A program made the translations under genes and the position numbers. From NCBI RefSeq assembly GCF_963676685.1, contig NC_092350.1:81840001-81904000 (forward strand): 64,000 bases of DNA. The letters are read 5' to 3'. Source of the DNA: Mytilus edulis. Taxonomy: Eukaryota. Shown one piece after another: positions 3,406-24,357 of the stretch; position 1 is the stretch's first letter, and every line of letters begins with the position of its first letter. Under the pieces are notes generated by a model. It did no database searches, was not told the origin of the DNA, and saw only the letters and a list, made by a program, of their open reading frames with translations.

Positions 3406-4110
3406 ATAAGATTTACTGAATACCTGTATTTTGTCGACAAAATTAATATATTATTTATTATCGACATTCCACACAATCCAAGAAAATTAGTAACTTCCGA
3501 GTATAAACGAATCTCAACATGTATAAATTATAATGATGAGTTCGTCCTTCGATGAAATGATAGCAGATGAATTAAACGAAATCCCAGTATTTAAACCGCT
3601 AAGGTATTTCATTTGCATAACCAATATATCTCAATCCAATATAACAAAAACTCTTTTAATACTTCTTTAACCAATAATGAATATATATTTTGTATTTTCA
3701 AAACTGTAATTCACTCATGGAAAATTCCTCCAGTCCTATGCATATCATTTTGAAAATATTGTTTTAATTTTTTGGCATTCATATTTAACTAGCATGCAGA
3801 TATCCTAAATATGTCAACAAGAGAAAAAACTGTCTGCTTGCGTGCAATCAGAACCAAAAGTAAAAAGTCAAATGTTGGTTTAGAAAAGTAATTTTCGAAA
3901 ATTTCAAACAATAGCATTCAAACTAAAAGGTAGGAATACGAAAATTCGAAAGGAAATGACCCAGCCTTTAGTTTTGGAACAAGAAGTATGAGGTTAGACT
4001 TAGACTATTCTTATTTCTTGCATTTTTGTGAAATTCATAATAATATTTCACAATACGTACAAATGTAACTTCTATACAGTATATATATATATATATATTT
4101 TTATTTTCAG

Positions 4111-4310
4111 ATTTAGACCGAAATAGAAGATTACTGGTGTCCGGGACTAACGGTGATTCATTACCAATTATCGCATTTCACGCATACCTTTCCAAAACAG
4201 AGATCGACCCGGGACACCATCATACCATAATCTTTGATTCTGTTCTTGCAAATTCCGGGAACGGCTATAGCAATAACACCGGAGCATTCACTGCTCCGTT
4301 AGGGGGAATG
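4111..4310 (+). pseudogene. C1qDC paralog 2, exon 2, 5' half (interrupted by insertion)
   Basis: Acceptor ttttcag|AT in phase 1 gives DLDRNRRLLVSGTNGDSLPIIAFHAYLSKTEIDPGHHH...FTAPLGGM, after which the insertion begins. Confidence 0.9.
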
Positions 4311-5053
4311 TATGGTGGCCGGTTAAGGCCATTTCGCGTTTTCGCGTTTTCGCGTTTTCGCCCATCATATTATATAGGGCGAAAACGCGAAAACGCGAAA
4401 TCGCGAAGTCGAAAACGCGAAAACGCGAAGTCGAAAACGCGAAAACGCGAAAACGCGAAGTCGAAAACGCGAAAACGCGAAGTCGAAAACGCGAAAACGC
4501 GAAATATTTTTTCTTTCCGATTTCGCGTTTTCGACTTCGCGTTTTCGCGTTTTCGACTTCGCGTTTTCGCGTTTTCGCGTTTTCGACTTCGCGATTTCGC
4601 GTTTTCGCCTTTTCGCGTTTTCGCCTTTTCGCGTTTTCGCGATTTCGCGTTTTCGCGTTTTCGCGTTTTCGCGATTTCGCGTTTTCGCGATTTCGCGTTT
4701 TCGCGTTTTCGCGTTTTCGCGATTTCGCGTTTTCGCGTTTTCGCGTTTTCGCGATTTCGTGTTTTCGCGTTTTCGCGTTTTCGCGATTTCGCGTTTTCGC
4801 CTTTTCGCGATTTCGTGTTTTATATACCAATACATATTCTTAGTATTTGACTTTATTTCATAATCTATTTTGTTCAATTCAATATTTTATCATAAATATT
4901 TGTTGTTTTTTAAGGTGTTTCGGTTAAGGTTTAACTACCAAGGCTTTTCCTCATCAGGTATCCCAAGCCTCTAACTAATAAAATAATCAGTTTCAAAGTA
5001 AAGTTCAAAGCATCCATACGCATAGAATTTAAAAATTCTGCATACCGGGATAC
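4311..5053 (-). repeat. Left terminal inverted repeat (743 bp) with (TTTTCGCG)n-type arrays
   Basis: Reverse complement of 6012-6706 apart from 48 bp of extra 8-mer units and a few substitutions. Confidence 0.95.
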
Positions 5054-5060
5054 GACACCT
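4913..5060 (-). ncRNA. Type III hammerhead ribozyme, predicted cleavage GUC| between 5054 and 5053
   Basis: Minus strand: AGGUG-UC|GUAUCCC-(82 nt)-GGGAUAC-CUGAUGA-G...GUUAA acc UUAAC-C-GAAA-CACCU. Stem I is 7 bp, stem III is 6 bp and the core is intact. Loop I AGGCUU is complementary to AAGCCU in the stem II bulge. Confidence 0.82.
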
Positions 5061-5162
5061 GGTAACTTTGTATTGATGTATTGTATTCTAAATTAAATCA
5101 GTTTATGATTTGATATAACCATTGTCTTTTATGTTGTGATTTATCCTATAACTTGGTTTATC

Positions 5163-5510
5163 CTATAACTTGGAGGATGTAAGTAGATCCTTCAAGTTTT
5201 TGTGTCTTTTATATGCTATGATCGGAGGTTTTGGAAACATGGTTTTTGTGCTATCATTTTGTTCAATTAGGTGCCAATGTTTTTTAATTGCTTTATTTAG
5301 TCCATTGAAGGAAGGATTAAATTTGGTGGCTAAAACAAATGGAGGCATTGCTCTTTTGTTTTTAAGCTTGTACCTTAGACAATCTTTTCTTTCCTTATGA
5401 AGTGCATTTGTTATAATGGGGTTGATATCTTTTTCCGAGTATCCCCTTTGGAGAAGTTTTGTTTTAAAAGTTTCAATTTCTTTTAGTGTATCTTTTATGC
5501 ATTTTTCTAC
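5163..5510 (-). pseudogene. Penelope-like RT C-terminal (thumb/linker) fragment ending without GIY-YIG
   Basis: Open frame VEKCIKDTLKEIETFKTKLLQRGYSEKDI...PFVLATKFNP...IKKHWHLI...FPKPPIIAYKRHKNLKDLLTSSKL*. The L..RGY and P.IAY+R.KNL+D.L motifs are typical of PLE RTs. Confidence 0.8.
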
Positions 5511-5773
5511 CTAGTTCGTAATTGTTTAATGTATTTTACATCAGGACTGGGAATAAATTTTAATCCCTTTGCAAGAACTAATATTTCATAGTTTGTGAGA
5601 TTCTCACGTGAAAACACTTCTATATAGTTTAAAGCTTTTTTTACATTTTCATGAAAGTGTTTTGTGCGTTTAAGATGGCCTTTGTTATTATTATGTATAC
5701 GGAGTTTACTTTTGTATTTTATTAATCGTTTTTTCTTATCCCTTTTTCTGAGAGATCGTTTTCTATTACTCAT
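5507..5773 (-). pseudogene. Penelope-like ORF N-terminal fragment
   Basis: Basic N-terminus followed by NLTNYEILVLAKGLKFIP, the L+..E..VL.KGL.F.P motif of PLE N-termini. The RT core is deleted between this and the C-terminal fragment. Confidence 0.78.
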
Positions 5774-5835
5774 AGTAATTTATTTGTATAAATTTGTTTT
5801 GTGACAAAACTATTTTGTTTGTTTGTATAATTATT

Positions 5836-5940
5836 TCAACTCTAATTGAGAGATGAAATGAATATATATGAACTTCAACTCTATTTGAGAGATGAAATGT
5901 ATTTTATTAATTCTACTCTATTTGAGAGATGAATTGATTT
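5836..5940. repeat. Three ~38-40-bp direct repeats upstream of the RT start
   Basis: tcaactctaattgagagatgaaatg / tcaactctatttgagagatgaaatg / tctactctatttgagagatgaattg. Confidence 0.85.
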
Positions 5941-6011
5941 GTATTTTGTTTAAATCTATTTCAAAAATTATACATTGTATATGTAAACTCTGTTGAAGTG
6001 TTTGTTCACTT

Positions 6012-6706
6012 GTATCCCGGTATGCAGAATTTTTAAATTCTGTGCGTATGGATGCTTTGAACTTTACTTTGAAACTGATTATTTTATTAGTTAGAGGCTT
6101 GGGATACCTGATGAGGAAAAGCCTTGGTAGTTAAACCTTAACCGAAACACCTTAAAAAACAACAAATATTTATGATAAAATATTGAATTGAACAAAATAG
6201 ATTATGAAATAAAGTCAAATACTAAGAATATGTATTGGTATATAAAACACGAAATCGCGAAAAGGCGAAAAGGCGAAAACGCGAAAACGCGAAATCGCGA
6301 AAACGCGAAAACGCGAAAACGCGAAATCGCGAAAACGCGAAATCGCGAAAACGCGAAATCGCGAAAACGCGAAATCGCGAAAACGCGAAAAGGCGAAAAC
6401 GCGAAAAGGCGAAAACGCGAAATCGCGAAGTCGAAAACGCGAAAACGCGAAAAGGCGAAGTCGAAAACGCGAAAACGCGAAGTCGAAAACGCGAAATCGG
6501 AAAGAAAAAATATTTCGCGTTTTCGCGTTTTCGACTTCGCGTTTTCGCGTTTTCGACTTCGCGTTTTCGCGTTTTCGCGTTTTCGACTTCGCGTTTTCGC
6601 GTTTTCGACTTCGCGATTTCGCGTTTTCGCGTTTTCGCCCTATATAATATGATGGGCGAAAACGCGAAAACGCGAAAACGCGAAATGGCCTTAACCGGCC
6701 ACCATA
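6012..6706 (+). repeat. Right terminal inverted repeat (695 bp), starting at the ribozyme cleavage position
   Basis: Starts with GTATCCC, the first bases 3' of the GUC site. It contains CTGATGA...GAAACACCT but lacks the upstream AGGTGTC strand. Confidence 0.95.
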
Positions 6707-6712
6707 GTAATG

Positions 6713-6973
6713 TATGTTTTTGCTTTTACTGTTGTTGGGTACCAAGGTACCCGAATGCCAGTTCAGCTGGTTGTAAACAGTAACATTGTTGGAGCTACTG
6801 CTGGTGATAGTTTATCGAGTACTTTGTACCCATCATCTTCAACCGTAGTGGTTATTCATCTTAACCAAAATGATGCATGCTTTCTAAGGACGACAACAAC
6901 TACCGGTTGGAATGTTGGTAATTTGTATAGCAGTGATTGGTCTAGATCATCATTTTCTGCATGGAAGCTTTGA
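6713..6973 (+). pseudogene. C1qDC paralog 2, exon 2, 3' half
   Basis: YVFAFTVVGYQGTRMPVQLVVNSN...SSFSAWKL*, with AATAAA at 6995-7000. Confidence 0.9.
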
Positions 6974-7484
6974 TTTGGATTAATATAACTTTTGAATAAA
7001 AAGGCAATATTAAAAGAAGATGTCTGTTTTAATAGTTGATAGGGTATGTCATTTTGAAGAAGATAAAACAAAGTAAAGACGATTAGATCATAACTACTAA
7101 AACAAAGTAATTCAAACAGCGTCATTAGAATAAAACATGTCAAAACAAAATATATATGACTACTCGCTATCAGTTCAGTAAAACTTAGAGCATCAGTTGA
7201 CATGTTGGTAAAAAAAAACAAGAAAATAAAAAAAAAACGAAAAGTTAGAAGTACAATTGCTTTTGCATGCATACCTAAAAAAAGACTTCATCAAGGCGCC
7301 CATTCAAAATAAGTGCTTATAAATACAACTGCCACATTGTACATATACATGTATATCAGGAGGTCATCCTCTGTTCTAAAGACAAAATATAATATACGTC
7401 CTAAAGGGGAAATTTTTTTAACTTTGCGATATAACAATTGCTATTTAAAATATCTTAGAAAGACATTGCTAAAATAAAAGGTAG

Positions 7485-22697: not shown

Positions 22698-23091
22698 NNN
22701 NNNNNNNNNNNNNNNNNNNNNNNNNNNNNNNNNNNNNNNNNNNNNNNNNNNNNNNNNNNNNNNNNNNNNNNNNNNNNNNNNNNNNNNNNNNNNNNNNNNN
22801 NNNNNNNNNNNNNNNNNNNNNNNNNNNNNNNNNNNNNNNNNNNNNNNNNNNNNNNNNNNNNNNNNNNNNNNNNNNNNNNNNNNNNNNNNNNNNNNNNNNN
22901 NNNNNNNNNNNNNNNNNNNNNNNNNNNNNNNNNNNNNNNNNNNNNNNNNNNNNNNNNNNNNNNNNNNNNNNNNNNNNNNNNNNNNNNNNNNNNNNNNNNN
23001 NNNNNNNNNNNNNNNNNNNNNNNNNNNNNNNNNNNNNNNNNNNNNNNNNNNNNNNNNNNNNNNNNNNNNNNNNNNNNNNNNNNNNNNNNNN
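22698..23091. other. Assembly gap (394 N)
   Basis: Run of N. Confidence 0.99.
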
Positions 23092-24312: not shown

Positions 24313-24357
24313 ACACCAGACGCGCGTTTCGTCTATACAAAACTCATCAGTGACGCT
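24313..24357 (-). ncRNA. Minimal type I hammerhead ribozyme in a retrozyme-like repeat (~24275-24460)
   Basis: Minus strand gcguca-CUGAUGA-GUU uuguaua GAC-GAAA-C GCGC G-UC|uggugu. The core is intact and stem III carries the palindrome ACGCGCGU. Confidence 0.8.

Follow-up and report, generated by a model that had tools for sequence, protein, structure and literature searches.

An insertion with fold-back arms in a C1q exon of Mytilus edulis holds remnants of an endonuclease-less Penelope-like element

The IS3EU/GingerRoot DNA transposons are diagnosed by TA..TA ends and 6-bp target site duplications (TSDs) (PMC10045372, PMC6839031). Insertions of Penelope-like elements (PLEs) often carry an inverted, 5'-truncated copy at their 5' end (PMC8557442), and a PLE protein was able to cut and extend both strands of its target in vitro (PMC11167929). 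The hammerhead ribozyme of PLEs is dispensable in vitro, and no RNA ends were found at its cut site (PMC11167929). Where PLEs without an endonuclease (EN) obtain 3'-OH ends at non-telomeric sites has yet to be explained (PMC8557442).

We analyzed a 2396-bp insertion (positions 4311-6706) in a 64,000-nucleotide stretch of Mytilus edulis DNA (the window). Like IS3EU/GingerRoot elements, it has TA...TA termini, an apparent 6-bp duplication, inverted ends, a multi-copy family and the capacity for foreign DNA (PMC10045372, PMC6839031). It differs from them in having no transposase, in having arms of several hundred bp of short tandem arrays, and in having a single duplication with one mismatch.

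The insertion also resembles PLEs with an inverted 5'-truncated copy (Craig et al. 2021, PMC8557442) in its ORF pieces, its candidate hammerhead in the terminal region, and an inverted partial copy that abuts the 5' end so that the 3' ends point outward. In contrast to those PLEs, there is no GIY-YIG in the ORF family, the inverted copy starts at the predicted ribozyme cut, and the copy appears to lie inside another element. EN-minus PLEs (Athena, Coprina, and EN-minus offshoots of EN+ clades, e.g., the Neptune-like MjPLE01; PMC8557442) likewise have an EN-less reverse transcriptase (RT) ORF and a hammerhead next to the 3' region. Unlike these, the PLE 3' region here lacks telomeric repeats in either orientation, the copy sits in a shell inside a C1q exon and not at a chromosome terminus, and its ORF belongs to a large, bivalve-rich group of 640-650 aa. 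The hammerhead is of type-III topology with a long helix-I insert, whereas a minimal type I is usual in PLEs. The animal non-LTR retrozymes (PMC7229834; bioRxiv 10.64898/2026.07.22.740005) are also hammerhead-bearing, PLE-related, non-autonomous and found in a mussel-like genome, but the insertion has no tandem array of 170-400-nt units, keeps ORF remnants, and has another ribozyme topology.

Classical Foldback elements (FB/Tetris) share long inverted arms of short tandem repeats, an arm-specific copy number and unrelated DNA in the middle. Drosophila FB elements make 9-bp duplications and belong to another superfamily, whereas the insertion has an apparent 6-bp duplication and TA ends. Tetris is cited in PMC8268682.

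Arms, ends and empty site of the insertion

We found that two arms (4311-5053 and 6012-6706) enclose a 958-bp core (5054-6011; Table 1). Global alignment of the left arm with the reverse complement of the right arm gave 4 mismatches in 695 aligned bases and one 48-bp (6 x 8) indel. The inverted repeat comprises the blocks 4311-4773/6244-6706 and 4636-5053/6012-6429. The original prediction of inverted repeats of ~700-740 bp around a 958-bp core was thus accurate (the arms are 743 and 695 nt long). However, what looked like one long terminal inverted repeat is two things: the shell arms (4311-4820 and 6245-6706) and a 233-nt inverted partial PLE copy. In both parts, the two arms have diverged equally little (3/462 in the shell and 1/233 in the PLE part). 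Differences between the arms, together with the unique core, led us to reject an assembly fold-back artefact.

The ends, TATGG...CCATA, are those originally proposed. The terminal 20-mer occurs exactly twice in the 64-kb window, as an inverted pair, with 0 occurrences expected by chance; a pattern scan of genome contigs and viral contigs gave 0 exact matches, and BLAST found no second copy of the element in the rest of the window. In contigs from two other organisms (X6 and X9), similarity is lost at 4310/4311 and 6706/6707 (uncertainty ~1 nt) in 12-20 contigs per run with unrelated flanks. The ends therefore belong to a multi-copy family.

The insertion was correctly placed inside a coding exon: when the two exon pieces were searched separately, they matched adjoining parts of the Pfam C1q profile (Table 1). 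We found the uninterrupted C1q exon in contigs of X6 and X9. In an X6 contig, 4307 is joined directly to 6710, and an X9 contig is joined likewise. The filled allele is therefore longer by 2402 bp, that is, the 2396-bp element plus a 6-bp duplication. This is consistent with the proposed 6-bp TSD (GGAATG/GTAATG, 5/6 match), which is known from this copy alone, with one mismatch, as the shell copies in the other organisms are not readable end to end. This pairing of TA...TA ends with a 6-bp duplication is the one published for IS3EU/GingerRoot (PMC10045372, PMC6839031), and IS3EU had been suggested originally. A perfect 8-bp (hAT-like) duplication was rejected because it needs asymmetric ends and the family ends are symmetric. 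Two other organisms lack the insertion in their matching sequence, which marks it as a recent event that broke the gene.

Table 1. Features of the insertion and its host exon (positions in the window)
Feature	Position	Strand	Description
Left part of interrupted C1q exon	4137-4310	+	Pfam C1q profile positions 1-46; 4305-4310 GGAATG, left TSD copy
Left shell arm	4311-4820		TATGG terminus; terminal mini-hairpin (stem 4316-4320/4327-4331); nested palindromic arrays of the 8-mer TTTCGCGT and its complement
PLE 3' tail downstream of predicted hammerhead cut	4821-5053	-	233 nt; carries ribozyme helix I, core and helix II
Candidate type-III-topology hammerhead	4913-5060	-	6-bp helix III; GUC cut site C5054|G5053; 9-bp helix I closed by ~80 nt; CUGAUGA, interrupted helix II, GAAA; core intact
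Unique core	5054-6011	-	Body of PLE copy; 5'-truncated, internally deleted
C-terminal ORF piece	5166-5510	-	RT thumb/linker; true homology from 5495
Internal deletion junction	5497-5498	-	~Residues 90-541 (whole RT core) removed
N-terminal ORF piece	5510-5773	-	Basic region and LAKGLKFIPSP motif
Three tandem repeats, 37-38 bp	5826-5939	-	5' leader of PLE copy
Inverted partial PLE copy	6012-6244	+	233 nt; first base is the first after the predicted cut; without the 5' strand of helix III
Right shell arm	6245-6706		Mirrors 4311-4820, six 8-mers shorter; ends CCATA
Rest of C1q exon	6707-6973	+	Pfam C1q profile positions 46-123; 6707-6712 GTAATG, right TSD copy

The Penelope-like copy, its ORF family and its candidate hammerhead

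The core was thought to hold N- and C-terminal pieces of a PLE-type RT ORF, and alignments to a 653-aa relative (P0004) bear this out. The N piece (5773-5510) matches its residues 42-73; the C piece (5510-5166) matches residues 542-651 at 53% identity (E 1e-35). Relative to other copies, the N piece is shortened by a 17-bp deletion near 5520. RVT_1 is present in the relatives; this copy has lost the RT core, and other copies run on from 5496 with an open frame. The element is thus a deletion derivative, as proposed, specifically of a PLE. A Pfam search with the two ORF pieces alone gave no matches, and protein-seeded scans with the C piece found no relatives in genome contigs or viral contigs. 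The N-terminal motifs and the thumb/linker pieces mark a PLE-type ORF, and 6012-6244 mirrors 4821-5053 as an inverted, 5'-truncated copy. Contigs from organisms X8 and X9 stop exactly at 6244/4821, as expected if this is a recurrent 3' end of the element. An AATAAA ends 31 nt before the PLE end at 4821, and one might speculate that insertion was poly(A)-primed, with the array supplying a TTTT primer.

We found that the absence of an endonuclease is a property of the ORF family. The ORF stops at 5163-5165, right after ...TSSKL, where EN+ relatives continue into a CxxC linker and GIY-YIG. Over 60 clusters of 640-650-aa relatives, many of them from bivalves, stop at the same place without PF01541, and GIY-YIG is present only in matches of ≤34% identity. 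The original prediction had noted the stop at LKDLLTSSKL* and had proposed to test longer copies for a full RT with no GIY-YIG; the ORF family does end ahead of the GIY-YIG position. EN-less ORFs (n=16) form one group apart from 57 EN+ ORFs (FastTree, SH-like 99). The group is rich in bivalves (mussels, oysters, pearl oysters and scallops), and its members in Pinctada sit on contigs of 47-115 Mb. An N-terminal (Naiad-type) endonuclease was considered and rejected, as there is none in this copy or in the full-length relatives. A metagenome scan with the EN-less alignment yielded 80 loci, 65 of them with GIY-YIG. Only four (L001-L004) clearly lack EN; they form a distantly related family whose 3' end is short, and they say little about the 8-mer shell. 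EN-less relatives in metagenome contigs end ~66 nt past the stop, without an array shell.

The proposed hammerhead is present as a motif with an intact core. A motif scan found one type-III hammerhead, where ~0.01 of such strength would be expected per 64 kb. Helix II is weak (2 bp, then internal loops), and the ribozyme fold, at -28.8 kcal/mol, lies ~10 kcal/mol above the minimum free energy of -39.2 kcal/mol. Rfam reported no hammerhead, either at gathering thresholds or at E≤10, and gave only spurious miRNA-like matches on the array hairpins. It found no hammerhead in 20 other PLE loci either, so the Rfam miss is uninformative. A 27-mer from the hammerhead had 0 exact matches in metagenome contigs. 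The predicted cut, C5054|G5053, falls to the base where the inverted repeat has its inner edge, a match that would arise by chance at ~1 in 1200 positions of PLE-derived sequence. The candidate may be active as a ribozyme: indirect support comes from the inverted copy, whose first base is the one predicted to follow the cut. None of 15 RNA reads compared with the sequence covers the site.

Origin of the combined insertion

We compared the insertion with contigs from short-read assemblies of three other organisms (X6, X8 and X9). Abundant PLE copies pass straight through both junctions, 4820|4821 and 6011|6012, into sequence unlike the shell or the inverted arm. At the first junction, X6 record 4 (depth 572) extends 14 nt beyond 4821 into non-array sequence, and ~95% of the depth of the hammerhead-bearing segment in X6 does the same. 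At the second, X6 record 6, X9 record 21 and an X8 contig reach 185-438 nt beyond 6011. The shell is ~10 times more abundant than the PLE part (in X6, depth in the thousands versus ~580 for 4863-5504), its depth increases toward the outer ends, and contig joints reveal array-loop-array copies that contain no PLE sequence. These data would be compatible with a small number of composite copies.

We lean, at slightly better than even confidence, toward nesting: a non-autonomous fold-back DNA element with an IS3EU/GingerRoot-like signature, holding a truncated, internally deleted EN-less PLE and an inverted partial copy made from hammerhead-cleaved RNA. The outer 510 and 462 bp, with their CpG-rich 8-bp arrays, would be the arms of the fold-back transposon, and this shell would have inserted into the C1q exon, presumably with a DDE transposase acting in trans. 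Its center would hold a dead EN-less PLE copy, 5'-truncated at 6011 and without the RT core, adjoining a second, inverted partial copy; the 3' ends of the pair both point outward, a known signature of PLE insertion. A break at the fold-back center may have provided two DNA ends that both primed reverse transcription, one copying a long RNA and the other a hammerhead-cut RNA to its very 5' end. The inverted repeat would begin exactly at the predicted cut because the template RNA had already been cleaved by the element's own hammerhead. The element contains no ORF for an IS3-like DDE transposase, which counts against nesting. Furthermore, the PLE pair lies at the exact center of symmetry of the shell, so nesting needs either targeting to the center of a palindrome or another origin, and the equal divergence of the arms in their shell and PLE parts would also fit one event that made both.

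One such event would be a single Penelope-type retro-insertion of the whole 2.4 kb, with the 8-mer arrays and terminal hairpin forming the 3' tail of a PLE RNA that may have been chimeric. Each outer end would then correspond to an RNA 3' end, one of a full copy and the other of an inverted copy made from the 743-nt 3' fragment left by hammerhead cleavage; the shell family would be 5'-truncated or non-autonomous tails mobilized by PLEs, and the likeness to IS3EU would be coincidental. Inverted 5'-truncated copies are standard for PLEs (PMC8557442), the arm begins exactly at the hammerhead cut, and divergence is uniform across the array and PLE parts. The climb in depth toward the outer ends is like that of 5'-truncated retroelements, and a terminal hairpin with a short single-stranded end would be a fitting recognition site for an RT. 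However, most of the hammerhead-segment depth in X6 leaves 4821 for non-array sequence, the RT would have had to copy nested perfect hairpins of >100 bp twice without error, and one arm is six array units shorter than the other. Precise, symmetric TA ends combined with a 6-bp duplication are a DDE hallmark, whereas PLE ends and 'tails' vary (PMC8557442, PMC11167929). We regard this account as unlikely. A fold-back transposon might instead have taken up a pre-existing genomic PLE fragment at the DNA level, by Pack-type transduplication or repair synthesis, with the match between repeat edge and hammerhead inherited from an earlier PLE insertion or due to chance. GingerRoot elements carry foreign DNA, including acquired gene fragments (PMC6839031), but the piece must have been cut exactly at both outward PLE 3' ends (4821 and 6244), without flanking DNA, and also placed symmetrically between the arms, which makes such capture very unlikely.

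The original prediction was of one hybrid family that pairs an EN-less PLE RT and ribozyme processing with DDE-type ends and integration, with this insertion as a deletion derivative. All the parts are physically together, an EN-less RT family needs some other integration route, and the element lies in an exon and not at a telomere. Nevertheless, copies typical of this PLE family do not have the junctions with the shell and the inverted arm in contigs of three organisms, and on these contigs the refutation test set with the original prediction comes out against it. In addition, the EN-less metagenome relatives have no such shell, the shell is far more common than the RT part, and there is no DDE ORF. 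This leaves a hybrid family with hardly any probability.

Significance for endonuclease-less Penelope-like elements

Nesting is the simplest account, and with it the striking claim of an RT/ribozyme element with DDE-type integration is removed. What stands is a large, diversified group of PLE ORFs in bivalves that stop exactly before GIY-YIG and yet are dispersed in the genome. It is conceivable, but quite improbable in our estimate, that EN-less bivalve PLEs enter chromosomes through DNA ends made by others; here, these would be two identical T-ended 3' ends at a break in the fold-back center, priming on a long and a hammerhead-cleaved RNA. If such entry were recurrent, EN-less PLEs would have in fold-back or IS3EU-like shells both favored insertion sites and vehicles. 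The role of the PLE hammerhead is unsettled, and the start of an inverted copy at the predicted cut offers a genomic footprint by which reverse transcription of cleaved RNA could be tested. If EN-less PLEs do recurrently enter through such ends, the edge of the repeat would be the first genomic footprint of hammerhead-cut RNA serving as a template in the PLE life cycle.

Insertion site and termini

The insert interrupts a single C1q-domain exon, and its flanks are the two halves of that exon. When exons were searched singly with Pfam, the left piece matched positions 1-46 of the C1q profile and the right piece positions 46-123. Public sequencing runs of several organisms (labelled mollusc, food or invertebrate-gut) contain most of the window, and we compared 3900-7100 with contigs of three DNA runs (X6, X8 and X9) and reads of one RNA run. 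We found that 4307 was joined directly to 6710 in one X6 contig and one X9 contig. Because both contigs have single-copy depth and flanks differing by a few per cent, they stand for an empty site that is either orthologous or a close paralogue; compared with it, the filled allele is longer by 2402 bases.

The TATGG termini of the original prediction held up, and the predicted 6-bp duplication is consistent with the empty site at this one copy. Assuming symmetric ends at 4311 and 6706, the two copies of the duplication, GGAATG and GTAATG, agree at 5/6 bases. The termini are those of a multi-copy family, since similarity is lost at 4310/4311 and 6706/6707 in 12-20 contigs per run of X6 and X9 whose flanks are mutually unlike. 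TA..TA termini and 6-bp duplications define IS3EU/GingerRoot elements (PMC10045372; PMC6839031), and GingerRoot elements carry foreign fragments (PMC6839031). The flank base adjoining the shell end (4310, 6707) is apparently G or C in the contig clusters listed. The pattern might reflect a preference for GC at the outer bases of the 6-bp target, which has been reported for GingerRoot; it might also be an artefact of how the tool places contigs.

A shell and a Penelope-like element (PLE)

Features of the insert
Feature	Coordinates	Strand	Length	Description
Insert	4311-6706		2396 bp	inverted arms 4311-5053 and 6012-6706
Outer arm layer	4311-4820 and 6245-6706			begins with TATGG and a mini-hairpin with a 5-bp stem
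Inner arm layer	4821-5053 and 6012-6244		233 nt each	unique, AT-rich
Core	5054-6011	minus (ORF pieces)	958 bp	ORF pieces
Candidate hammerhead	5060-4913	minus		full type-III layout (motif reading)

The window is AT-rich (32% GC). A global alignment of the arms showed 4 substitutions across 695 positions and a single 48-bp indel, equal to six units of an 8-bp repeat. Beyond the mini-hairpin, nearly the whole outer layer is a set of nested palindromes built from arrays of TTTCGCGT, an 8-mer, and its complement. Arrays at 4450-4567 and 6450-6567 have sub-gathering Rfam scores as plant miRNA precursors (MIR859, 76 bits versus a cutoff of 130); the scores are an artefact of long perfect hairpins and do not point to miRNA genes. 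The array hairpins, if transcribed, could supply small-RNA pathways. Elsewhere in the window, 394 N at 22698-23091 mark an assembly gap or masking.

IS3EU-like DDE ends, an endonuclease-less (EN-less) PLE reverse transcriptase (RT) and a hammerhead had been proposed to form one hybrid family. The contig comparison decides most of this question, against a single family. In X6, 4821-5496 is a single contig (depth 572 of ~590 in its bin) whose leftmost 14 nt, beyond 4821, do not resemble the arrays. Right of 6011, contigs of X6 (depth 216), X9 and X8 extend 185-438 nt, and the sequence reached there does not resemble the inverted arm. Both junctions are thus absent from typical copies of this PLE. 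At 6244/4821, X8 and X9 contigs stop exactly, as expected of a recurrent element end. Arrays and termini reach depths in the thousands, about ten-fold that of the PLE part, and many joints are array-loop-array modules without PLE sequence. The metagenome, genome and viral contig collections scanned gave no copy of the PLE/shell family.

The main alternative is that the 8-mer arrays are the PLE's own tail and the whole unit a single retro-insertion; the uniform arm divergence and the position of the PLE pair exactly at the symmetry centre speak for it. We consider this unlikely: PLE contigs run past 4821 (X6) and past 6011 (X6, X8 and X9) into other sequence, the TA ends are precise, and perfect hairpins of >100 bp would have to be reverse transcribed.

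A candidate hammerhead and a proposed history of the insert

The hammerhead proposed for the element has a counterpart in a predicted motif with intact layout: a 6-bp helix III, a GUC cut site, a 9-bp helix I closed by ~80 nt, a CUGAUGA core, an interrupted helix II and GAAA. A motif scanner recovered exactly this site, and hammerheads of this strength arise by chance at 0.01 per 64 kb in Markov-shuffled windows. Rfam found no hammerhead in the window; it was also blank in 20 PLE-bearing control loci, so its silence is weak evidence. Because the MFE structure is ~10 kcal/mol more stable than the ribozyme fold and helix II is weak, any activity is putative. Separately, a solitary minimal type-I motif, a type known from PLEs and retrozymes, lies at 24318-24350 (minus strand; CUGAUGA, short helix II, GAAAC, 2-bp helix III with a palindromic CGCG loop, GUC site), with no tandem array around it.

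The predicted cut falls between C5054 and G5053. The inner edge of the inverted repeat is at 5053/6012, the next base being already mismatched, so the right arm starts with the first nucleotide of the predicted 3' cleavage product; the 5' strand of helix III is absent from this arm. With ~1200 nt derived from the PLE, the two positions would coincide by chance on the order of once in 1000 cases.

We infer that the most likely history combines a fold-back shell, a PLE insertion and a move into the C1q exon. A break at the palindromic centre of a fold-back, IS3EU-like non-autonomous element would have let both ends prime reverse transcription of EN-less PLE RNA. One product would be a 5'-truncated, internally deleted PLE body, the other a full copy of the 3' fragment left by hammerhead cleavage. 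The shell would have transposed into the exon before or after the PLE event. Inverted 5'-truncated copies at the 5' end are frequent in PLE insertions (PMC8557442), and a purified PLE protein cuts both strands of its target and extends them (PMC11167929). Speculatively, two features fit priming on a poly(A) tail: the last base of a polyadenylation signal lies 31 nt short of the PLE end, and the array unit supplies a TTTT 3' end.

The EN-less reverse transcriptase family

On the minus strand, the core has an 88-codon ORF bearing the PLE N-terminal motif (N piece) and, in a different frame, a 115-codon stretch terminating in ...LKDLLTSSKL and a stop (C piece). Scoring the C piece against 1.84 billion proteins gave 1546 relatives. 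The closest full-length ones (643-653 aa) have a similar basic N-terminus, an LSKGLKFIP motif and RVT_1 as sole domain, and terminate at the homologous ...LTSAKL, in agreement with the prediction that the ORF ends before GIY-YIG. More distant relatives (P0123, P0080) have a CxxC linker and then GIY-YIG. A search with the 653-aa relative P0004 gave dozens of 640-650-aa clusters from Mytilus edulis, M. trossulus, M. galloprovincialis, Saccostrea, Pinctada and Argopecten, none with PF01541; GIY-YIG was confined to matches of <=34% identity. No relative examined had an N-terminal endonuclease. In a quick FastTree tree of 78 ORFs without named references, 57 endonuclease-bearing (EN+) ORFs stood apart from one group (SH-like 99) of sequences with the EN-less ending: 12 proteins from the database and the metagenome ORFs L001-L004.

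Marine metagenome contigs (L001:3841-3907, L002:5413-6100, L003:925-1770) contain a distant EN-less PLE family that ends only ~66 nt past the stop codon. One copy adjoins a 20-bp minisatellite array, and another contig has a 25-bp array upstream. Its ORF has a ~340-aa acidic, coiled-coil-like N-terminal extension without endonuclease.

Aligned to P0004, the N piece covers residues 42-73 and the C piece residues 542-651; judged from these remnants, the RT core is gone and the copy is dead. Near 5520, other PLE copies have 17 additional bases. Contigs of all three DNA runs break at 5496/5499, where one branch runs on in open frame (...RSSNNK/KDTLKE, matching the relative P0001) and is backed by seven RNA reads. 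The contig ends suggest that the deletion form is probably present at other loci too. Reads with the full-length continuation at 5496 come from RNA run X21 (organism B), and 15/15 share one orientation.

EN-minus lineages arising within EN+ clades are already known (PMC8557442), and the EN-less group is therefore a variant and not a new class. Because seven RNA reads support the open-frame branch, the EN-less family seems to be transcribed in intact form.
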